Below, one piece after another: positions 4,372-52,649 of a DNA stretch of 64,000 bases; position 1 is the stretch's first letter, and each line of letters starts with the position of its first letter. The notes under the pieces are model-generated. The model was not told the origin of the DNA. It saw only the letters and a list, made by a program, of their open reading frames with translations, and searched no databases. The position numbers were made by a program, and so were the translations under genes. This DNA comes from Trichosphaerium sp. ATCC 40318. Its lineage: Eukaryota; Protista; Tubulinea. The DNA lies in contig JALMLS010000573.1 in NCBI GenBank assembly GCA_038496445.1, positions 124,001 to 188,000 of the forward strand, written 5' to 3'.

Positions 4372-7138
<2,767 letters not shown>

Positions 7139-11333: not shown

Positions 11334-11528
11334 GTGGATTTAGTTTTTCCAGAACTGACAAGATCCGTCAGATCTTGTAGTTTTTAATAGATCTTGCAAG
11401 AACTAACAAGATCTTGTAAGAACTAACAGAAGTTGCAAGATCTGTCAGATCTGACTAAACACGAAAACCAAAAGTCACAAACAGCAAAAAGTTGCAAAGA
11501 TTAGCAAACTTGAATGATACGGACAATA
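11334..11528. mobile_element. Right-end fragment of the TA-flanked MITE family (full copy 28195-29041)
   Basis: Near-identical to ~28848-29043; ends GCAAACTTGAATGATACGGACAA-TA. Confidence 0.8.
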
Positions 11529-12914
11529 AGTAGCATTATGAACTACTCATTTAGATACAATAATTCCTATCTGCACGAAACGAGAAGCAAGCCTCTTTTG
11601 ACGAATACGCTAGGTGACACTCTGCGGTAGCGTTCAATTTTTTAATTTTACGCTTTTTTTTTGTTCTGGCACGGACTTTGACGTCATTTGATTATTATCA
11701 CGGATTCGTTGCAAATAAGGTGGTAAAAACGCTAAAAAGGAAAATGAGACTTTTTGGCCCATAGAAGACCAAGTTTGAGACAGTTTCGATTTCCAACCAA
11801 GTACAGACAAAACCCAAAATAGATAAGGAAATCATATCTCCCGAAATTTCGCCAACTTCCATATTTTCCGGGTTCACGAAGCACCATCGAACACGTAAAT
11901 CTAATCACTCTAACGTTATACTTTGTTCTTAACAAACGTCAGTCAGGCAAAGGCAAATAATGAATGAGCTTTAGTCATGAATACCTGTGAACACGCCTAT
12001 TAATTCACAACAGCTTTTAGTCTCCACGTGGTGTGTATCATATCAATAGTGTACAGACTTTAGCAGCTAACAAAGCCATATTGATTTTACAGCACCTGTG
12101 AATAGTATATTCCATATTGGACGCTATTGGAGTTTGTTGGAGGAGAGTCATGAAATACTAATAGTACAGCAGACGGGGAAAAACACTTTTTGTCCCTTTA
12201 AGTCACTTTCAATGTGGCGTCATTCACTATAGTAGTGTCTGTTGTTACAGTCAAAGACCTTGACCTCAAAGTATAAATTAGATTTGTTCTCACCCAATCC
12301 ACTGCGCGAACGCCATCTTCAAAGGTGTTAAGGCACAATATCGATAAAAATCTTCTCCTATTTCTACAACTAGCTATGATATTATCTCTATTGCCATCTA
12401 AAACACCCCAAGAGCTAAAGTTGGAGTTCATCTCTGGAACAAAACCTCACAAGAGTCTCAGTACTTACCACCGACTGCAGTGTTAAACACAGAGTAGTGT
12501 ATTGTGGAAAAAAATTGGGCTTAAATTTATGCAGTAAGTCATAAATTACAAATTCTTATTGGTCTGGTGGCACCAATAAAATTTCAACAATACATATAAT
12601 AGCATCTTGTTATTTTATCTACAACATACACCTCTTACCTTCCAAAGTTGAACAAATTACAATTGAACATTGCACTTATAAGTATCCTTTATCTTCAGTG
12701 CAAGGTGTATGGTATCGCGATTATGGTGCCATGGATGTTTCTATAAAGAGATTAAAAATGCAGGATACTTAAGAAAACTACAACAAGCTCACATGAAACT
12801 CAACAACTTTATAAGAATTTGTTTGCCAAAACAAGTTATTGACCATTTATGAGGAAAACTAAACTGTGGTTGTTTATTGATAAATGTTGCTTGTTTACAA
12901 CAGACACATTAGAA

Positions 12915-15900
12915 TTACTTTGCTGTACTTTCAAGGAGAGCTATTTTTGCCATAAGAATGGCATTCCTCTCCTTTAGGCTAGTGTTGTCTCGCATTAGAT
13001 CTTGGACACTTTTGGAAATGTTGTTGACGCTTTCCTTGAGATTGATTATGGTTTTCTGTGAATTCCGCTGAAGTTCAGCCAGGCTCTTCTTTAATTTCTC
13101 TACCTCGTTTGATTCTTGTAATTTTAGTTCGAGATTGACATAATTGTAACTTGACTGTTCATCAGCAGTTGAATCATCATGGGCAGCCCACAGTTTTCTA
13201 TTACAAAACTTAAGTTTAAAAGAACAGAGATATAAACTTATACCGGTTAGAAATAAAAGTGTCGTCAGAATCAGATAGTTCATCATCAGATAGCTCGCCA
13301 GCTGAACCATCAGTATCTACTTCTGAAGTTTGATCTTCAGTTTGTTCATCATCGGATAGCTTGCCAGCTGAACCATCAGTATCTACCTTTGAAGCTTGAT
13401 CTTCAGTTTGTTCATTATCGCCTTTCTCTTTCTTTGTCTTTTTATCAACTTTCTTGGCTTTTGAAGTTTGACGTTCTTTACGTTCAACTTTGATGATGTA
13501 CCGAGCAACAGCTTGAGTATCTAAAATAGTGTTTGAGAATTTAATCACATTTTTCAATTGTATTGCTGAGTGTACCTTGTGCCACTACCAGCTCATCGTA
13601 TACTGCATCTTTAAGTTTATTTGGTGGCAGAAGTTTACCAGTGCGGTCTACCAATGCATAGTGACTTTGATAGCCTGGTTTTATTGGCTTTCCATGTAAG
13701 CTTTCAGTGCGGTATCTGGCACCATCTTTGTTTGCTATAGGTATGAGAGGATCATGCTTTTTGTCAAGTAAGTAAAGAATATCCACATCGATATTATTGT
13801 TTGCTTACCGGATAAACGTTCCCAGGAGTAACAAGACTTAAAACCAGTGTTTTTGCAGTTCTTCCTGATAAATCATATGAAGTAGCATACTTTATGCTTC
13901 TCTATTGGCGAAAATGAATACTGACCACCTGCAAAAATTGGGTAATAACGTACAGTGAAGTATATCCCTTGACCATAGTATCCAGCATCTAAAGAACTCA
14001 CAGTTCCAAAACCAGCCTTTACAATACTGTAAGCTGCTTCTTCGCTTGTTCCATGGACCATCAATATCACTGGTAACTAAATAAAATGTTTGTAGTGCAA
14101 GAGTACCAAGAACATTACCTTATCTTTTTTTTCAGTATAACAATCATTAAAAGCAGTGAGGGAGTTGTACTTTTGGTACACAGTCTCTTTGTATTCATCG
14201 TAGGTACTTTCTTTCCAATTTTGTTTTTTAAACAACTTGGGCAGTTCTCTAGTAGGTGCATGTTTAGAATCATGAAAATGCCTATGAAGTGTGGAGCAAC
14301 CGTACTGATGTCTGTGTGTCAGTATTTCGTTGAATCGACCAAAGTTTTCTGTCAAGATCTCATTATAAACGAGAGTCGCTTCAATGATATCGTAATTGTC
14401 ACAGCCATGTAGTTTTGACATCTCCTGTTTGAGGATGTTGAACTCCCTGACAGCCACTTTGTCATTTGTATCGAGGAGATTCAGTATTTTGTAGTGTGTC
14501 GCCTTTGCAACAATGCCTCTTTTTATAATATAAGAATTAATAAAAAGAAATTGAACGCACGTGTTAGAGCTATCCCAATTATTTGCAAAATACAATCGCG
14601 GATTTAGACTCCATGCGTTTTTACCTTTTAATCCTTTTGAAAACTGTTTTTAGTATTATATCACCACACACTTCTTACCTTCAATACACTCTTCTTTTAA
14701 GGAATCGTCTTGCCTGTTATTACCCCAAGCATCATTGGGCATATCATGCAGAATACCTTGCATTGATTGCCCATCTTGTTTCCAGAATTCCTGTAGAATG
14801 TTGTTTGTAGTGTAGACGTTAACAGTGAAGATATCGTACTGGAGACAATACAACTTTGGGATCGCATGTAGAACAAATTAAATAACAAATACCTTTTTCC
14901 ATTGCCAGTTTGAAATAATACCGTGTTGGCTAAACGTTGTATGGTTTGTTTAAGGTATTGGTATTCAATAAAGTGTACCAAGTGATGAAGCCATTCGTCA
15001 AACTCTTTTCTCCCCTTTACGTTGACATTTTGCGAATAGTGCTTTTTACAGTATCTCCACAGTGGACGGCATTGTTTACCACTCGGACAGTATTTTAAGA
15101 AAGTTATGAATTTTTCAACAGCTGAGGGTGTATTTGATATCACTTCTCTAATTAAAATGAACATAAAGTCTTGCCACTTTCTTTGGCACGGAGTTACTAC
15201 TTACAGTGTTAGCTATTATTTCACCAAATTTTTTGTAATGTGCCCAATACCTGAATCCTTGTTGGTTTCACTTTCATCAATAGTATCAATATTATTTGCG
15301 TTAGGTTTGATTAAATTCAACATTAGCATTGATATATAGTCAAAATCTCAAATGATTGTAAATAAACATAGTTTTTATCTCATTTGTGATATTACCTGTA
15401 GTGTAAATCAAAGCTGTCTTTCCATCTTTATCAACAACTTCAATATTAGCATTGGCGTTGAGTAATGTTGATATAACTCCATTGTGTCCTTTCCATGCTA
15501 AATAGTAGAGTGAGATATGTACATGTTGTATCTCATCATATCATGTTACCTGCATGTATTAAAGCTGTTTTTCCATCTTTATCAACAGAATCAATATTAG
15601 CGTTGGCTTTGAGTAAGATTGATACAACTTCATTGTGTCCTTTTTGTGCTAAATAGTAGAATGAGATATGTACATGTTGTATCTCATCATATCATGTTAC
15701 CTGCATGCAATAAAGCTGTCATTCCATATTTATCAACAATATCAACATTGGCATTAGCTTTGAGTAAGAGCAATACAACTTCATTATCTCCATTCCGTGC
15801 TAAATAGTAGAATGAGATATGTACATGTTGTATCTCATCATATCATGTTACCTGCATGCAATAAAGCTGTCATTCCATATTTATCAACAACATCAAAATT

Positions 15901-18630
15901 GGCATTGGCTTTGAGTAAGAGCAATACAACTTCATTATGTCCATTCCGTGCTAAATAGTAGAATGAGATATGCATCTTATCATGTCATGTCACCTGCATG
16001 TATTAAACCTGTCATTCCATCTTCATCAACAAAATCAACATTGGCGTTGGCTTTGAGTAATGTTGATACAACTTCATTGTGTCCTCCTTGTGCTAAATAG
16101 TAGAGTGAGATGTGTGTTGTATCTCATCATATCATGTTACCTGCACATATCAAAGCTGTTCTTCCATATTCATCAACAACATCAATATTAGCGTTGGCTT
16201 TGAGTAATGTTGATACAACTTCATTGTGTCCTCCTTGTGCTAAATAGTAGAATGAGATGTGTGTTGTATCTCATTATATCATGTCACCTGCATGTATTAA
16301 AGCTGTCATTCCATATTCATCAACAACATCAATATTGGCGTTGGCTTTGAGTAATGTTGATACAACTTCATTGTATCCTTCTTGTGCTAAATAGTAGAAT
16401 GAGATGTGTGTTGTATCTCATTATATCCATGTCACCTGCATTTATTAAAGCTGTCATTCCATCTTTATCAACAACATCAACATTGGCATTGGCTTTGAGT
16501 AAGAGCAATACAACTTCATTATCTCCATTCCATGCTAAATAGTAGAATGAGATATGTACATGCTGTATCGTATTATGTCATGTTACCTGCATATATTAAA
16601 GCTGTCTTTCCATTTTTACCAACAGCATCAATATTTGCATTGGCGTTGAGTAAGATTGATACAACTTCATTGTGTCCTTTCCATACTAAATAGTAGAATG
16701 AGATATGTACATGTAGTATCTCATCATGTCATGTTACCTGCATACATTAAAGCTGTCATTCCATTTTCATCAACAGCATCAATGTTGGCGTTGGCGTTGA
16801 GTAAGATTAATACAACTTTGTTGTGTCCTTCTTGCGCTAAATAGTGGAGTTAGATATGTACATGTTGTATCTCATCATATCATGTTACCTGCATATATTA
16901 AAGCTGTGTTTCCATTTTTAGCAACAGCATCAACACTAGCATTGGCGTTGAGTAAGAGCGATACAACTTCATTGTGTCCTTTCCATGCTAAATAGTAGAA
17001 TGAGATATGTACATGTTGTATCTCATCATATCATGTTACCTGCATGTATTAAAGCTGTCATTCCATCTTTTCCAACAGCAATATTGGCGTTGGCTTTGAG
17101 TAATGTTGATACAACTTCATTGTGTCCATTCCATGCTAAATAGTAGAATGAGATAAGTACATGCTGTATCTCATCATGTCATGTTACCTGCATGTATTAA
17201 GGCTGTGTTTCCATATTTATCAACAACATCAACATTGGCGTTGGCTTTGAGTAAGAGTGATACAACTTCACTGTGTCCTTTTTGTGCTAAATAGTAGAAT
17301 GAGATATATACATGTTGTATCTCATCATATCATGTTACCTGTATGTATTAAAGCTGTCTTTCCATCATCATCAACAATATCAATGTTGGCGTTGGCGTTG
17401 AGTAAGATTGATACAACTTCATTGTGTCCATTCCATGCTAAATAGTAGAATGAGATATGTACATGCTGTATCTCATCACATCATGTTACCTGCATACATT
17501 AAAGCTGTTATTCCAAGTTTATCAACAGCATCAATGTTGGCGTTGGCGTTGAGCAATGTTGATACAACTTCACTGTGTCCTTTTTGTGCTAAATAGTAGA
17601 ATGAGATATGTACATGTTGTATCTTATCATGCCATGTTACCTGCATGTATTAAAGCTGTCATTCCATATTTATCAACAACATCAACATTGGCATTGGCGT
17701 TGAGTAATGTTGATACAACTTTATTGTGTCCTTCTTGTGCTAAATAGTAGAATGAGATATGTACATGTTGTATCTCATCATATCATGTTACCTGCAAGCA
17801 ATAAAGCTGTCCTTCCATTTTTACCAACAGCATGAATATCGGCGTTGGCTTTGAGTAAGATTGATACGACTTCATTGTCTCCTTTCCATACTAAATAGTA
17901 GAATGAGATATGCACACGTTGTATATTATCATGTTATGTTACCTGCATACATTAAAGCTGTCATTCCAAGTTTATCAACAGCATCAATGTTGGCGTTGGC
18001 GTTGAGCAATGTTGATACAACTTCATTGTGTCCTTTTTGTGCTAAATAGTAGAATGAGATGTGTGTTGTATCTCATTATATCATGTCACCTGCATGTATT
18101 AAAGCTGTCAGTCCATATATATCAACAACATCAACATTGGCGTTGGCGTTGAGTAAGCTTGATACAACTTCATTGTGTCCTTTTTGTGCTAAATAGTAGA
18201 ATGAGATATGTACATGTTGTATCTTATCATGCCATGTTACCTGCATGTATTAAAGCTGTCATTCCATATTCATCAACAACATCAATATTGGCGTTGGCTT
18301 TGAGTAATGTTGATACAACTTCATCGTGTCTTTTTTGTGCTAAATAGTAGAATGAGATAAGTACATGTTGTATCTCATCATATCATGTTACCTGCATGTA
18401 TTAAAGCTGTCATTCCATCTTTATCAACAGCATCAACATTAGCGTTGGCATTGAGTAATGTTGATACAACTTCACTGTAGCCATTTGTTGCTATACTTTG
18501 TCAACTATTTGCTTACCAAGCATTACAAACCTGCAAAAGAAAACACAATTTCAATTATGGGGAGATGGATGTTGTGGGTTGGTTCTTGCTGTTCAAAATG
18601 TTGGTTTTTGTCATTCTGCGATTCTGTCAT
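12915..18630 (-). CDS. 21-ankyrin-repeat protein with central unknown domain, PARP-like ADP-ribosyltransferase domain and C-terminal coiled coil
   Basis: Exon 1 MTESQNDK...IVFSFA (18630-18531). 21 ankyrin exons (18490-15396). PARP motifs MVHGTS, GYYGQGIYFT, LVTPGNVYP, GYQSHY, YDELVV. Acidic duplication and coiled-coil tail. Confidence 0.85.
13279..13419 (-). repeat. 66-bp in-frame tandem duplication in acidic linker
   Basis: EQTEDQASKVDTDGSAGKLSDD / EQTEDQTSEVDTDGSAGELSDD. Confidence 0.85.
15396..18490 (-). repeat. Tandem array of ~151-bp units, each a 99-bp ankyrin exon plus a ~43-52-bp phase-1 intron (21 exons, 20 introns)
   Basis: The acceptor motif (CTAAATAGT on +) recurs 20 times from 15498 to 18340. 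Minus-strand intron GTAAC/GTGAC...TATTTAG. Exon consensus AQKGHNEVVSTLLKANANIDVVDKYGMTALIHA. Confidence 0.95.
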
Positions 18631-25790: not shown

Positions 25791-26074
25791 TGTACTTATA
25801 AACAAAAGATAGGACGATCGTGATAAAACTGTTTATAGCACTTCGTTTAGCGCTACAGTGACGTACCGCTCAAATTCTAGACCTAGTAAGACACCCACGT
25901 GTCCTAAACAATTTCCCTTTTTCAATGAATAGTTTTGTACATTTGTGTTGGCGCTAAATTTAGATATTTAAACTGGAATATTAAGTCAGGTGTACATTGC
26001 TTCCACCCATTAAAAGCATCGCTTTGGTACAAAACATAGTTCGTTTACACTCGAATAGCATTAAGAAGCCAACA

Positions 26075-27415
26075 ATGGATGAAAACAGTATTAAAGAAGT
26101 ATCTAGCGATTCTGATACCAATAAGGAGCTTTTAGACCTACCAACGGAGATAATAGCTCATTTACTTGAGTTTATAGATCGTTCTAATCGTTTTTCCGTC
26201 TCTCAAAGCTGTAAACGATTATCGGATATCATACACCAGCACGTTGGCTACTATTTTATTGTATTTCAATCATACGACACCAAGTCGCAGTTTTCTCAGC
26301 TTCAAGGTAGTCCGCTATTAAATAACACAAGCATAGTCCTTTCATTTGCACAAGATGAACATCTCAAGCAACTTGCAGGTGTTAAAAATCTTTCAATTCG
26401 TCAAAGCGGGATATCAGACACAGGATTAAACTATTTGTGTGGTGTACAGGATCTTACTCTATCTAATTGTACAGATACAACAGAAAAAGGATTAAAACCA
26501 GTAGTACGACACCTCAAATCCATTTGCTTGTATGCTACGCCAGGATTGACAGCAGAGGGATTGAAGTTACTGTCTGGGATACCAAACATCGATATACGTG
26601 AATCCCCAGTCGTAGATGATGATGTTCTAGTTTCATTATCAGGAGTATATACTATAGATTTGCGTAAGTGCTACCTCATATCAGACGCTGGTATTTCAGC
26701 TCTAGCTGGCGTTCACACCATTAATTTAAGTGAAACAAACGTGACAGACAAAGGTGTTGCAGCTTTGGCAGGTGTTCACACTATCAAGCTTTGTAAGTGC
26801 CTAGGGATCACTGGAACATGTATGAAAAGCCTTGCAGGTGTACACACTATATATCTATCGCATACAAACGCAACAGATGATTGGATTACACCACTGTCGG
26901 GTGTGCATGAAATAATTCTTAATGGCTGTCAACAGATCACTGGAACCTGTATGAAAAGTCTTGCGGGTGTACACATTATAGGACTAGCAGAAACCAACGC
27001 AACAGACGATTGGATTAAGCCACTGTCGGGTGTGCATGAAATAAGTCTTAGTAATTGTCATCATATCACTGGAGAATGTATGAAATACCTTTCAAGTGTA
27101 CATACTATATGTCTATCAGAAACGAATGCAACAGATGATTGGCTTAAGCCTCTACATGGTGTGTATGAAATTGATATCTCATCATGTAGTAATATCACCT
27201 TGGAGTGTATGAAGTACCTTAAAGACGTACACATTGTTGATTTATCATTCTCAAAAGCAACAGATGATTGGCTTGCCCAACTCTCTAGTGCAAAGTTAAT
27301 TTGGTTATTTAATACTCCTGGAATTACAGATAACTATTGTAAGGTATTAGGAAGTAAAGGAGTCACAATAATGGGAAAACCGGGTATGAACACCCTACCT
27401 TCATCCTTCACTTAA
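26075..27415 (+). CDS. Intronless F-box plus leucine-rich-repeat protein
   Basis: F-box LLDLPTEIIAHLLEFID...VSQSCKRL. Repeated LAGVHTIxLSxT/C units, with a 44-aa unit repeated 3-4 times. Confidence 0.9.
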   Translation: MDENSIKEVSSDSDTNKELLDLPTEIIAHLLEFIDRSNRFSVSQSCKRLSDIIHQHVGYYFIVFQSYDTKSQFSQLQGSPLLNNTSIVLSFAQDEHLKQLAGVKNLSIRQSGISDTGLNYLCGVQDLTLSNCTDTTEKGLKPVVRHLKSICLYATPGLTAEGLKLLSGIPNIDIRESPVVDDDVLVSLSGVYTIDLRKCYLISDAGISALAGVHTINLSETNVTDKGVAALAGVHTIKLCKCLGITGTCMKSLAGVHTIYLSHTNATDDWITPLSGVHEIILNGCQQITGTCMKSLAGVHIIGLAETNATDDWIKPLSGVHEISLSNCHHITGECMKYLSSVHTICLSETNATDDWLKPLHGVYEIDISSCSNITLECMKYLKDVHIVDLSFSKATDDWLAQLSSAKLIWLFNTPGITDNYCKVLGSKGVTIMGKPGMNTLPSSFT

Positions 27416-46781: not shown

Positions 46782-49700
46782 TCAAGCAAATGCTATAAGT
46801 TCTGTTGGCTTGTTTGATACTTTTGTTCTCTTAAACTTTTTACTAAGGTACTGCGCTGCTTTGACGTCACCTGAAGAATAACAAGCTTAGAAATACAGCC
46901 ATATATATATATGAATTCTAGTAGATAAAGTACATGTCAACGTACCACAATAAACAAGAACAGGAATTTTCTTCCAAAGTTTGTTACTTCTCAATTTTTT
47001 TAAAAGATTATCAGCAGCGAGTTCTTCACCATCTCCAGAACGATATCTATTTGTTACTACACGAAACTTACTACCACAGAATCCAGAGTACTTCCTGAGC
47101 CATGCGAAAAGTTCATTGGAAGATGTCATTTGTACGACCTTAAATGAGTGAGAAAAAACTGAGAAAAAATAATAATGTGTTAGCAATCACGTTTCGGTAA
47201 AATGGTTCATTTCAACGAATATACTGCCTCTCTCGTAGATAAGCGAGTATATAAAAAGGTCAAGAAATAGTCCGTTTTATACGAGACCAAACATTTCGCT
47301 TTACCTTAACTTTTTTTGGTAACTTCTCAAGCATTGATATTGTCATTGTATTCTCATCTGATGTTTTATCATTAACCCATACTAAAATACTCTTTGCATC
47401 GCGACAATCAAGACCGAATTCTACCAAGTCAGTTGTATCTGTACGTTTATAATAAACAAGATAGCGAGGAAGTATCTAGAGACCAAAACAGTAAGACACA
47501 CTACTCAACAAAAAGCAGCCTACCTGATTTTTAGAGAACACTACAATCTCATCAGCTTCCGGTGTATCTGTAGGATCACAAGGATAATACACAGTATTAT
47601 TTCCCTTGCGTTTTACAACAGCATAATGCGAGTCATATCCAGGCTATAAAAGAGAACAGAAAGTCAATAAAAACAACTTACTCAGATGGTTGTACCTTGC
47701 ATGGCTTTCCCAGTAAAGTATTTTTGATACCAATACCTGGTTGCTCAGTAACTGGGTAAGCTTTACCCATCATCACCCATGAGATAAGCATACATTGCTC
47801 ACCGGTATCTTCTTTAAGACCAGCATACACAGAACCTGTTGAAGAAAAGTTAAATTTTCCACAATATTATTGGACCAGTTCACGTGCCATATTTAGGATA
47901 CTGAGTAAAGTATATACCCTTTCCTTAAATTAAATTATCAGTACTATATATCAAATACTGGGGAGGACGCAAAGTAAATATGTACCGAAGTATCCTGGAT
48001 CTGTCTGTTTTTTCTTCTTTTTTTCTAATTCCTCAGGTTCTAAAAAATTGTTCTTTGCAATTTGAAAGCTCACTTCCTGTCAATTTGTAAGACTTATCAA
48101 TGCTCTTCTTTACTATTATATTCTTACCTCTGATGTTCCGTGAAAACCAGCAATGAGATTTATACCTTCATTACCAGATACGCGCATTACATAGTTTTGC
48201 AAGTGCCACATTATCCTAAAACGTTTGGTTAAACATTTACAGCTTTATCTCTTCTATAATACTCACCACTCTTTGTGTTCCTTGTCACCTACTAACTTGT
48301 TAGACGTTACTTGAGTAGTATGCTCAATACCTTTATTATTTTCTATTTTAGATTTTGTCCGTTTTATAGTCCTCTCAACTAGCCCATCATAAAATATTCG
48401 AAAGTTATTCTCTAACTTTTCATTATCAAAGAATACAATCTTCGATAATGTGAAGAACGACTGCTTGTTAACACCCATGAACTTATAGAACATATTTCTA
48501 GCTCTAATATATTCCTTGCAACGTTCCTAGGGTCGCATACGGTAAGAAAAAGCAGTAAAAAAAATAGGAAAAAAGATTACCGGATGAGTTTCGTTACTAG
48601 CTAATGTTGTGTATCTCAATCCTTCTTTTTTAATCCATTTACCTTGATTAAAGAAAGACACACCAGATATACTACTCCATAGATCTTTTTTTACATTTTT
48701 GATAACAGGATGCCCTCTATCTAAGTGTGCTGCAACAACTTTACTGCCTAGTAATAGGTTAGAAGAACAAAGGAACATGATGAAGAGTTATTACCTGTTT
48801 GTTGACTAACATATGGTATTGGCGGATGTTTAACAAAGTATCCACTTTGAACAGCAACTGGACATTGCGGTTCAATATGTGGCATCAGATTAGATAAGAA
48901 GGGATTAAGGCATTCCTACAAATAAGAAGGTTTATAAAACTACAACTTACTGTTAACTCTGTTTGGTACCTGCCAAAGATGTGGTGCTTTACCACGTATA
49001 ACAACTTTAAGCACTTCTGATTCATAGTACAATACAATAGTATTGTCATAGAAATCCTTCAATATTACAGAGTTGCAGAAGAGTTTATACCGGACATTGT
49101 GATAACCTTGCAAAAGTTAGTATGACTTAAATAAAAGACATCTTGGATTGTTAAGGCACTTTAACACATCACATTGACGTACATCTTAGTTGTACTTGTA
49201 GGTCAGTGAAACTATCGGATGAAAGAAGCTTTGCGGTTATACAAAACGCAAGAAACTTTGGTTCATCTCCTAGTACAACTAAGCCTTCTTCTAGATCCTT
49301 AAATACAAGGTTAAGAAAATAACAAGAAAAAATTTAAAAGTCTTACTGGTTTTCCATTTTTATCAGGATACACTTGTTGTACTTTGTCTGAAGATACTGC
49401 ATTATTATCAATGCCCCTAAGACGTAGCAAATCCCAAACTTCGTTATTGCGCCTCATTACATACGTCACTGTATCATCGCCTCTAGTATCTTCAACGATA
49501 GTCTTTGAATGTGTATCATTCTTTAGAGACGGAAAATAAAGCATATCAGCCTTTGGTCTCAGAGACAGGATGATGTATCCTTTACATCCATAATGCATCT
49601 ATTACAAAAACATTTAACAACGCACGTGTATATTACTATCTACTACCTGTTCAGCCTCGTTAAGTCTGAAACAAAACTTCATAGCAACAAGAAAGCTCAT

Positions 49701-52649
49701 GATTTGAAATACACTTTTAGGACTCAGAACACCACAAAACAGCTTTGAAAGTCTATCTTGAGCTTCCTTTTCTGTAATTACTGCTGATACTTGTCTTGAT
49801 CGGCTATCATTCAATAATCTTTTTATGTGCTCTTGTGGGCCAACAAAAGCGCTCATTACTTTTGATAGTATCATAGTATCAACGCACACAGTAAGTGATT
49901 GCTATGAAAACAATAAGAAGTTAGAGATCTTCATTTTGTTACCTTGTCAAACATAATGTCACCAATAGAATGTAAGTAATCTACTCCAGCTGCAATTTCT
50001 ACAGGCACAATAAGATTATTACAACGAGAGTGCGCAAAGCTCACAACGGTCGATCTACAAGAAAAAGTCACTGAATGAGCAGTTTAGTAAGTTGTTTAAA
50101 CAAAATATGGCAGCCTTCAAGTAGGTCCAACTATGTTCCGTTATTGCCAAAGGTATTCTGTAGCATACAGTTGAATAATTGAGAAAGCATGACGTACAAT
50201 GACACGAAATTGTCTATAGGTTTTGAAGTACTATCATTGCGAAGACGATGTTTCATTTTTGCTAACATTTGGCGTATTTCTAAATAAACGCCTGGAACTT
50301 CAGCAAAATATTTCTTAAGCCGCTTCGCTTCAGATGCTAGAGCCTCCTCTACAACTGATACGTTCTTGCCTACAACTAAATATTAAATATCTTAAACGAA
50401 GGCAGTGATATGGCATATCGTTTATGCTAAACCACGTGTTGACGTTTTTCGGAAAAAAAAAATAGAGGTGACATTTTGCCACGTGTTTAACGTAAATGAC
50501 TGACAAAGAGTCCTTCTTCTCACGCACCAAGGCAAGAACCAAAGCACAAAGACCCATATGGGAAATACTCGTATAGAACTTTCTTTAGGGATTCTTCTGT
50601 TTGTAGTAGATCACCTGAAAGAACGTCCAGTTTTGAACCCACAGCAATGACAGAATATGAGTTCTTGTTTTGCTGGTATAGCACTTTCTGTAATGTCTTA
50701 CACCAGTGCTCTATATGCTCACATTGTTCTTCAATAGGTAAGGAGGTATCAATCTGTAAAATAGACATAAGCTTTGGTATGAAGAAAAAAATAAGAACGT
50801 ACAACAATTAGGTAAATGGAAAGGCGTTTTGAAAAAAAATACTTGTGAACCGCCATGTATTCCATCTGCCCTGCAAAATCAACAACATTGAAAGATATAC
50901 CACCTATCCTATAACATGTATTGAATAAGTTGGTTTCTTTGTAAGTAAGAGCGTGCCTCAAAGTTGTCGTATCAAAACCGATTGTTGATGGAACATTATC
51001 GTTTTTTGTGCCGGATAGCATATTCACCAAAGTAGTTTTACCTTAAAGCCAATTAAGTACATGCATTGGCTATAACGAGTGATACCTGATCCTCCGTGTC
51101 CTAGTACTAATAATTTTGCTGAATTTCCTTTCACAAACCGATGTGGAGGTAACAGGTTGCCAATTCCCATTTTCGAAGGATTTTCTTTGTCTGCAAAGAA
51201 ATGACCAATATGTGCTATCAACCCTTCAATAGAAGAATCTTTTGTACAGTCAACTGGTAGTACTCCAGCTGCTAGCCAACGTCCATAACTAGTAGCTAAA
51301 GTAGGTAGTCAGTATGACCTTCAAATATCTTTGAGTCGTACCTTGCAGAAGAGGAAGAACGGCGTTCTTATCATGTATAATATAAACTTTAGGTTTTGTA
51401 GCTAACTTAGATAAAATAGTTGATACTAGGCCAAACTTCCACTCTCTTCTGTGAACTGTTGTTAATATAACATCATACCCACTAAAATCAATGCTTGTTT
51501 GCATATTTAGCAATTGGCTAAACTTGAAGACCTCTTTGACTCCCAACGATTTGTATAGTTGTTTACAATATTCATAAGTTTCTACAATCGCAACGATTTT
51601 GTTTTGTCTCGTGTTGCTGTATGTGTCCTCGAAATCCTCTATGGGTTCACCTCTAATTAAACCAGTATCTCCTTCTATAATACCGCTTGCATCACCGGCA
51701 ATATTAGAAGGTAGCAATGCGGTGAATTTCGCTGTAGATCTCACTTTTAAGATTTTAAGACCAAGACTTTTCACTATCTCTTGCCCTGACTACCATAGTA
51801 ATTAACCACTATTAACCTTTACTGAATTTTTGGTTTCCAAACAATACTGTTTATGTATAATTGTTTGATTGACTAACACATTGACGTACAGTGATGCAAT
51901 GATATTTGCACAGAAAAACAAAAAAAATTGAATTTCAGCTTAAAAACTGGCAAACAAAATAAAGGATCACGTACAGTCCAATTATCCTCAAAAGAAAAAA
52001 TGTTTGCTGCATATGTATGTGCCAAGTCTTCGCTCTCTGCTCTACTAATGACACTATCATCTTTTCTATTAAGTTCAATAATGTACTAAATTTTCTAAGT
52101 GAGTGTTCGTGTCACGTGTTCAAAAAAAAAACAGCGATGCGCTCTTTTTTAGCGTACAATTAGTGGATAATTAGCTTTTGATACACCTTGTACAATCCCT
52201 ATATACTCTAGTTTCTTCCTAGCGAATGCGAAAGAGTCTTCATCATTCGATTGAAATAAAATGATAAAACCTTCGCTATTTCGGCTAGTACTTACGTTAA
52301 CGACGCGGTAAAGAATTAAAACAGTAAAATAAGACCGTAACTTACATTGCACTAACGTTTGATTGCTTTAGCTGTTCTATTTGTTTCGGTTTAGCTGACA
52401 TAAGGTGTAATTGAGTACAACACAGCTCAATCGTTCTCTCGGTTCCTTTCCTATCTCTGAAAAGCATTTTTTTACCCTTTAAACGTAATTAAAGAAAGTT
52501 TGACAAATTATTTAGCATTGTATGTATTATACGCACAACATCTAGTACAAATACGTTAGAAGTAGTTCTTAATGCGTAAACGCACCCTGTATGAAATTAT
52601 TATCGTCACTTCCGAAAATAAACACACGAAGTGTTCTCTTTCCCGCCAT
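46782..52649 (-). CDS. Roco-like protein: degenerate Ras-like N-terminus, ROC GTPase, COR, PARP-like ADP-ribosyltransferase, C-terminal alpha/beta domain
   Basis: KLLVLGHGGSGKTTL, STIG, DFAGQMEY..VH, VGSKLD; YLHSIGDI (COR); GFHGTS, DPGYFGKGIYFTQ, GYDSHY, ADEIVVF, ILPRY. The 5' exons are less certain. Confidence 0.8.

Follow-up and report, generated by a model that had tools for sequence, protein, structure and literature searches.

The DNA analysed here, called the window below, is a stretch of 64,000 nucleotides from the amoeba Trichosphaerium sp. ATCC 40318 (GenBank assembly GCA_038496445.1, contig JALMLS010000573.1, positions 124,001 to 188,000), and all coordinates are those of the window. 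On its minus strand, between positions 12915 and 18630, we found a single intact gene in which a long array of ankyrin repeats, each encoded by its own small exon, is followed by a poly(ADP-ribose) polymerase-type (PARP-type) catalytic domain. Judged from the alignment of the repeats, these differ chiefly in the beta-turn and the inner helix, at the positions with which ankyrins bind their ligands, and the array looks like part of a fast-evolving target-recognition enzyme. The reading that we prefer, and hold to be probable, is that the product is a cytosolic, probably dimeric ADP-ribosyltransferase choosing its targets via a long ankyrin solenoid.

The gene comprises 34 exons and 33 introns, all of the latter of the GT..AG type, and encodes 1356 codons plus a stop, with no internal stop. 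The start codon lies at 18630-18628 and the stop codon at 12915-12917. Its parts follow each other in the order hydrophilic N-terminus, 21 ankyrin repeats, cap repeat, cysteine-rich linker, PARP-type domain, lysine-rich and acidic spacer, and leucine-zipper-like helical tail. Exon 1 (18531-18630) carries the start codon, the N-terminus and the first half-repeat.

Tandem Repeats Finder detected 20.5 copies of a repeat with a period of 151 nt at 15410-18478 (score 4155), the repeat unit on the minus strand consisting of an exon and a short intron. A preliminary description of this DNA, made from its letters alone, had taken this unit for an ankyrin exon with a phase-1 intron, and reading of the splice sites showed it to be correct in every detail that could be checked, including 21 stop-free exons, exon lengths that shift in multiples of three, introns of varying length and symmetric phase. 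The 21 ankyrin exons are found at 18490-15396 (minus strand), counting the partial first repeat at 18490-18392. Nineteen of them are 99 nt long, one has 96 nt (17135-17040) and the last one 102 nt (15497-15396). Each encodes one 33-residue ankyrin repeat, and since all 21 are of phase 1-1, the reading frame survives whichever exon is duplicated, deleted or exchanged. The 20 introns between them have the form GTRACAT...CTATTTAG and measure 52 nt in 15 cases, 48 nt in three, and 49 and 43 nt in one case each. In the 19 internal exons that were checked, only the ankyrin frame is open, and the two other frames contain stops, save that in a single exon one of them does not. A conserved stretch of 19 nt at the 3' end of the introns was found 19 times at two or fewer mismatches, in the array only, against an expectation of 0 from shuffled sequence. 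An additional 96-nt exon of phase 1-1 (15346-15251, minus strand), absent from the preliminary description, encodes a degenerate cap repeat, which brings the number of ankyrin repeats to about 22, all on frame-neutral exons of their own.

The gene model was built from canonical splice sites and from joints in public contigs, and it was compared end to end with two transcript-derived proteins. These two, P0001 (590 aa, 66% identity) and P0002 (450 aa, 62%), were the only true relatives returned by a search of 1.84 billion representative proteins with exons 14518-14119 read through (134 aa); a homologue search with the same query whose length window excludes full-length kin gave nothing. Between the start of the linker and the C-terminal end of the protein, they match the spliced model with identities of 61% and 58%, respectively, and the alignment is unbroken at every exon junction, which validates the model. 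P0001 sits on a contig of the Joint Genome Institute (JGI), L001, in which the frame upstream encodes ankyrin repeats; the relative therefore has the same architecture.

Nine public sequencing runs were found, none of them recorded as RNA, and the contigs of four were compared with the window over 12850-15700, an interval that takes in a short piece of the array. The introns 13521-13575, 13757-13808, 13902-13953, 14077-14118 and 14249-14305 are missing from the X1, X4 and X5 contigs, which differ from the window by 0-1 mismatches per exon and thus come from RNA of the gene or of a near-identical allele. Record 17 of X5 joins the cap exon (15346-15251) to 15199-15102, and because the 41 letters left over in it match the last ankyrin exon, the ankyrin array is joined to the linker in a transcript. 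The loose ends of X2 and X4 contigs spell the junction of exons 1 and 2, and X2 carries a relative of about 92% identity, which confirms the introns 14519-14560 and 14633-14677. The PARP part is transcribed and spliced, and splicing also connects the linker with the last ankyrin exon; we infer that all 21 ankyrin exons reside in one mRNA. That array and PARP domain belong to one spliced gene, as had been proposed beforehand, is borne out by the stop-free model, the removal of the PARP introns and the junction in record 17 of X5. The intron 14249-14305, removed in the contigs of three runs, is itself 57 nt long, in frame and stop-free; if retained, it would add 19 residues to the PARP domain and keep the frame.

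Assemblies are prone to errors in tandem arrays of 3 kb, and repeats might have been collapsed or wrongly expanded in this one. Such an artefact is hardly credible, because the 21 units are all distinct (mean divergence 13%), intact and in frame, whereas a collapse would not yield 21 different intact exons; sequences of ankyrin-exon junctions are also present in independent runs. A second alternative places the diversity at the RNA or somatic level, through regulated skipping or choice of the phase 1-1 exons or through somatic rearrangement of cassettes, with many receptor isoforms arising from one genome. All array exons share this phase and have near-identical splice sites, and any subset of them would remain in frame. 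Joints that go back by 99 or skip 145 do occur in the short piece of array covered, but they are found in assembled contigs and are expected of paralogous repeats when only two units are offered. An 8-bp inverted repeat in the introns (ATGAGATA / TATCTCAT) was considered as a functional hairpin and rejected, as RNAalifold found no consensus pair and the minimum free energies were no lower than those of shuffles (z from -1.7 to +0.9). We consider diversity of this kind highly improbable.

The history of the array was read from the relationships among its units. The distance between units is independent of their separation (0.12-0.14 at offsets 1 to 11), and the nearest relatives, which differ by 2.6-10.6%, are separated by 1 to 15 units. 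Within a unit, the two exon halves (5' and 3') and the intron that comes after them often differ as to their nearest relatives; in unit 2, for example, the 3' half is shared with unit 15 and the intron with unit 6. The pairwise homoplasy index (PHI) permutation test gave p = 0.0025, and four gametes were present in 43% of the biallelic site pairs, some of them only 1-3 nt apart. By these measures the units are recombinant mosaics of the kind that repeated gene conversion over short tracts, together with unequal exchange, leaves behind; recurrent mutation at hypervariable sites contributes as well. The mean protein identity between repeats is 71% in the window array, 38% in the array on L001 and 42% between the two, which argues for a homogenisation or expansion specific to the lineage.

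The mean pairwise difference is 0.077 for introns and 0.161 for exons. The proposition that the introns are specially homogenised was nevertheless rejected as stated, since their extra conservation is confined to the ends that carry the splice signals: nucleotide diversity (pi) is 0.048 in the first 7 nt and 0.028 in the last 17 nt, but 0.112 in the middle 29 columns. The latter value is close to that of the four-fold sites of invariant codons (0.092) and of the framework codons (0.111), which indicates that exon and intron have travelled together as one cassette. The homogenised cassette of the preliminary description can thus be kept as far as segments have been exchanged among cassettes, as the PHI test supports, whereas a special homogenisation of introns is contradicted by the similarity of mid-intron and four-fold diversity.

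The 21 repeats were then aligned codon by codon, with positions given in designed-ankyrin numbering. Eleven of the 33 repeat positions are invariant, and the highest entropy is found at positions 5, 3, 32, 14, 22, 10, 13 and 2. In designed ankyrin libraries, Binz et al. in 2003 reportedly randomised six positions, namely 2, 3, 5, 13, 14 and 33. Five of these six a-priori binding positions are among the eight most variable ones (hypergeometric P ~0.0013, calculated by hand). Ankyrin binding is known to use the beta-hairpin/loop and the inner helices (PMC4986451). The ratio of non-synonymous to synonymous differences per site (pN/pS, Nei-Gojobori method) was 0.77 overall; it reached 1.23 at the six a-priori codons vs 0.60 at the other 27, and likewise 1.23 at the ten most variable codons vs 0.37 at the remaining 23. 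At codon positions 1 and 2, pi was 0.312 for the binding positions, compared with a mid-intron value of 0.112 (Mann-Whitney P = 0.011) and one of 0.111 for the remaining codons (P = 0.0016). On the binding face, divergence that alters amino acids thus amounts to about 2.8 times the neutral level given by introns and four-fold sites. This excess goes beyond what relaxed constraint predicts, and diversifying selection on the binding face is likely.

These numbers bear directly on a simpler explanation, in which the array is a young tandem expansion without special function, produced by recent unequal crossing-over. Relaxed constraint would then let its surface residues drift, and the protein would be no diversifying recognition module but an ADP-ribosyltransferase of ordinary regulatory or scaffold type, with a tankyrase-like housekeeping role. 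One-repeat exons are also found in ordinary ankyrin genes such as human ANK1. The neutral divergence between units is only about 0.09-0.11 at four-fold and mid-intron sites, so the array must be young or homogenised, the overall pN/pS is 0.77, and that at the binding codons is not significantly above 1. However, relaxed constraint alone should not carry the non-synonymous positions of the binding codons beyond the neutral level, which they exceed by the factor given above, and the frame and the framework residues are kept in all 21 exons. We therefore regard this explanation as rather unlikely, and return to the preferred one, a target-choosing ADP-ribosyltransferase, and to its catalytic domain.

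The PARP-type domain (13521-14518, minus strand) is distributed over the exons 14518-14306, 14248-14119, 14076-13954, 13901-13809 and 13756-13576, running into 13520, and is supported by Pfam and Protein Data Bank (PDB) profile matches and by the contig-confirmed introns. Exon 14076-13954 alone matches the Pfam family PARP (PF00644) with 20.5 bits (E 3.6e-4), and P0001 and P0002 pass the gathering cut-off of 26.7 bits with 30.9 and 36.5 bits, respectively. Among solved structures, the profile of the domain matched PARP12 (E 5.6e-9), PARP10 (1.4e-6), PARP4 (1.5e-6), ZAP (1.3e-4) and PARP1 (~0.14), and no tankyrase chain at E <= 1, though many tankyrases have been solved. In these alignments the histidine of 'VHGTS' falls on the 'HGTS' of PARP12, the tyrosine of 'GIYFT' on 'G.YF', and the glutamate of 'YDELVV' on the glutamate of 'DDEFVV' in PARP4 and on the isoleucine position of PARP10. 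As all three residues align to catalytic positions of solved PARPs, the histidine-tyrosine-glutamate (H-Y-E) triad is present by homology, with its codons at 14055-14053, 13962-13960 and 13594-13592, respectively; the H-Y-E ADP-ribosyltransferase domain announced downstream of the array is confirmed to this extent. The absence of a SAM domain, also noted earlier, agrees with the Pfam scan of the linker and C-terminal exons and of P0001 and P0002, which found no SAM, WGR or PARP regulatory (PRD) domain.

An Atlas feature search likewise points to PARP. With a weak AlphaFold model as query, the top 50 Foldseek hits were all PARP catalytic domains, PARP10, PARP12, PARP14 and PARP15 coming first, at TM scores of only 0.4-0.5, and we limit the structural claim to a predicted 'PARP-like' fold. 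A phmmer search of PDB with the 41-aa exon that carries the histidine and the tyrosine gave matches to TALE repeats, which were discarded as spurious sums of many sub-threshold matches.

Further members of the subfamily occur, some of them behind other N-terminal modules. P0004 and P0005 are more distant and are likewise ankyrin-PARP proteins. A gene for a ROC-type protein lies in the window itself (46782-52649, minus strand; Roc match on the open reading frame (ORF) 50749-51027) and ends with the same subfamily signature ('FHGTS', 'GKGIYFT', 'AYPVTE', 'PGYDSHY' and 'DEIVVF'). Its PARP-like exons, at ~48140, 47924, 47760, 47643-47479 and 47475-47263, were missed when the C-terminal half of the ankyrin-PARP protein was compared with the window by tblastn (E <= 0.01), and were recovered by motif scan and alignment. 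One effector domain is in this way found behind two different N-terminal modules, ankyrin and ROC, within 35 kb.

In JGI metagenomes, eleven loci encode relatives of the subfamily at 35-46% identity (tblastn). The four that were examined (L004, L005, L007 and L008) are intron-less ORFs of up to 2282 residues with a G+C content of about 50%. By Pfam, L004, L005 and L007 combine FG-GAP and/or calcium-binding EGF repeats with a C-terminal PARP domain, with exactly one predicted transmembrane helix; L008 has FG-GAP/EGF repeats and a single transmembrane helix as well, its PARP end being given by the tblastn match alone, with no Pfam PARP at E <= 0.001. All four have the features of receptor-like single-pass proteins with a predicted cytoplasmic PARP output. 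Since the same subfamily follows ankyrin repeats, a ROC module and transmembrane receptors, it constitutes a recurrent C-terminal output behind differing sensor-like modules, in keeping with a signalling or effector unit that is coupled to sensor domains of various kinds. The glutamate is kept throughout the subfamily alignment, and the histidine also, except for a glutamine (QGTS) in P0005 and L006:1-627, which may be inactive or have an altered chemistry. A giant-virus origin of the subfamily received no support, no relative being found in the IMG/VR viral contigs.

Taken together, the following mode of action can be proposed. Cassettes of exon and intron would undergo unequal crossing-over and short-tract gene conversion with each other in the germline, and the array would evolve in this way, the 1-1 phase keeping every recombination product in frame, and selection would keep or favour diversity on the binding face. 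The array would recruit a protein ligand, which the PARP domain, or its use of NAD+, would modify, and the C-terminal zipper could pair two chains.

Several points weigh against this proposal. At 1.23, pN/pS does not clearly exceed 1, and the sites of recombining paralogous repeats are taken as independent in the tests, which they are not; for this reason we call diversifying selection likely rather than proven. Relaxed constraint on the surface could mimic the contrast between binding face and framework, yet it would not alone triple pi over that of the introns. The two AlphaFold models of the PARP domain are of low confidence (pLDDT 35 and 50, from shallow alignments), and with a glutamine at the catalytic histidine of P0005, activity need not hold in all members. 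The transcript contigs are short, none of them spans the array, and some derive from paralogues or from another strain (90-99% identity).

As to the biological context, a role in conflict, be it antiviral or antibacterial defence or self/non-self recognition, is the likeliest candidate, and a setting of allorecognition, in a multinucleate amoeba that fuses, is just as reasonable. It seems quite improbable that the gene is an allorecognition determinant of the kind of the fungal het-type NOD-like receptors (NLRs), with their conserved ankyrin, WD or tetratricopeptide (TPR) repeats, and not an anti-pathogen sensor. Trichosphaerium is indeed multinucleate, with a complex life cycle (PMC10521059), and the array matches the signature of fungal NLR repeats, that is internal conservation, a hypervariable binding face and repeat exchange (PMC4986451), but in the pieces of the linker and C-terminal exons and in P0001 and P0002 Pfam finds no NACHT/NB-ARC or HET domain. 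More broadly, the ankyrin-array-PARP, ROC-PARP and single-pass FG-GAP/EGF-receptor-PARP proteins might together make up a class of protist sensors, so far unrecognised, that serve innate immunity or allorecognition, with ADP-ribosylation by a dedicated H-Y-E PARP subfamily as their common output and with an ankyrin sensor diversified by cassette exchange and possibly by regulated exon choice; we put this forward as a doubtful, tentative extension of the preferred reading.

The cysteine-rich linker (14561-15199, four exons, about 190 residues) is kept in P0001 and P0002; the Pfam scan of its exons and of these two proteins returned no family for it, and the Atlas search no lead. The spacer (13244-13520) is lysine-rich and then acidic, and contains a 66-nt tandem repeat at 13271-13420 (2.3 copies, 90% matches), which is translated into acidic repeats of 22 residues that separate the PARP domain from the zipper. 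The RNA-derived contigs of X1 and X5 are short of about one copy, pointing to a length polymorphism or a paralogue. The helical, leucine-zipper-like tail with the stop codon (12915-13197) is also kept in P0001 and P0002; it gives a weak match to Pfam TSC22 (E 6.5e-4), and in P0001 to bZIP_2. No transmembrane helix is predicted in the ankyrin-PARP protein of the window.

The neighbours are ordinary eukaryotic genes (kinase, F-box/leucine-rich repeat (LRR) and ROC). The exons of the protein kinase gene lie at ~4372-5941 (minus strand), with Pfam Pkinase on three ORF pieces, and an intron-less ORF of 472 aa at 25997-27415 (plus strand) encodes the F-box/LRR protein, which is unusual amid genes cut into very short exons. 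A 19-nt tandem repeat of 3.5 copies is located at 11385-11452, downstream of the ankyrin-PARP gene, and no Rfam family was found in the window. The G+C content is 34-39% throughout, and the window fits the draft genome of Trichosphaerium, with 37.7% G+C, a mean exon of 154 nt, a mean intron of 75 nt and 8.7 introns per gene (PMC10521059); the paper describing that genome mentions neither ankyrin nor PARP.

If the preferred reading is right, the gene would be a third independent ankyrin-PARP fusion beside the two known ones, and the first case found in which a homogenised ankyrin array, built with one repeat per exon and hypervariable on its binding face, feeds an ADP-ribosyltransferase. It would link the fast-evolving repeat sensors, such as those of fungal NLRs and brown-algal ROCO proteins, with the PARPs that act as effectors when host and pathogen are in conflict, and would do so in a lineage of amoebae in which giant-virus genes are reported to be very numerous. 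The presence of the same PARP subfamily at the end of ROC and transmembrane receptor-like proteins would make a general sensor-to-PARP design directly testable.

Among known systems, the tankyrases (clade 4) come to mind first, as in these an N-terminal ankyrin array recruits partners to a C-terminal H-Y-E PARP domain, and self-association is likely in both, through SAM in tankyrase and through the zipper-like tail in the window protein. The latter is devoid of SAM, however, its catalytic domain is nearest to PARP12, PARP10 and PARP4, and the repeats of tankyrase do not form a homogenised array of one-exon cassettes. The comparison with tankyrase drawn in the preliminary description is therefore sound for the pairing of ankyrins and PARP without SAM, and otherwise an analogy only, with a catalytic domain from a different branch of PARPs. 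It has been reported that PARPs gained ankyrin repeats independently at least twice (PMC2964712). The ankyrin-WGR-PRD-PARP proteins of clade 1A, from Dictyostelium, ciliates and fungi (PMC2964712), are protist ankyrin-PARP fusions as well, but the window protein has no WGR or PRD by Pfam, and PARP1-type chains were matched at E ~0.14 only. Having neither SAM nor WGR nor PRD, it belongs under that scheme neither to the tankyrases nor to clade 1A, and would appear to represent a third, independent joining of ankyrin repeats to PARP. The closest catalytic domains, both by profile and by Foldseek on the weak model, are those of the mono-ADP-ribosyltransferase PARPs of clade 3 (PARP12, PARP10, PARP14/15 and ZAP). 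The vertebrate enzymes of that clade have isoleucine, leucine or tyrosine in place of the catalytic glutamate, which the window family keeps, and they carry CCCH, WWE or macro domains instead of ankyrin, ROC or transmembrane-receptor modules.

With regard to the array, the closest parallels are found in two groups of proteins that are themselves only candidate immune receptors, the fungal NLRs (PMC4986451) and the ROCO proteins and NB-ARC-TPR proteins of Ectocarpus (PMC3341825, PMC11378527). The ankyrin, TPR and WD repeats of fungal NLRs are unusually similar to each other, have hypervariable sites on the binding face and are exchanged within and between genes. The mean repeat identity of the window array (71%) is lower than the 85% criterion applied to them (PMC4986451), fungal repeats are without separating introns, and the window gene has no nucleotide-binding oligomerisation domain (NACHT/NB-ARC) in the pieces scanned by Pfam, its effector being a PARP. 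The Ectocarpus genes share with the window gene one repeat of constant length per exon, frame-neutral exon edges, exon shuffling and variable sites on the concave face, and a ROC-type gene with the same PARP output lies in the window. Their repeats are LRR or TPR and their exons of phase 0-0, whereas the window gene has ankyrin repeats, phase 1-1 and tiny introns that are co-duplicated with the exons, with no antisense or inactivated exons seen in the array, and its output is a PARP, not a GTPase or kinase. With the analogues named at the outset, the brown-algal one-repeat exons and the fungal NLR arrays, the ankyrin-PARP gene of Trichosphaerium has in common one repeat per exon in symmetric phase and a hypervariable binding face with exchange among repeats, respectively.

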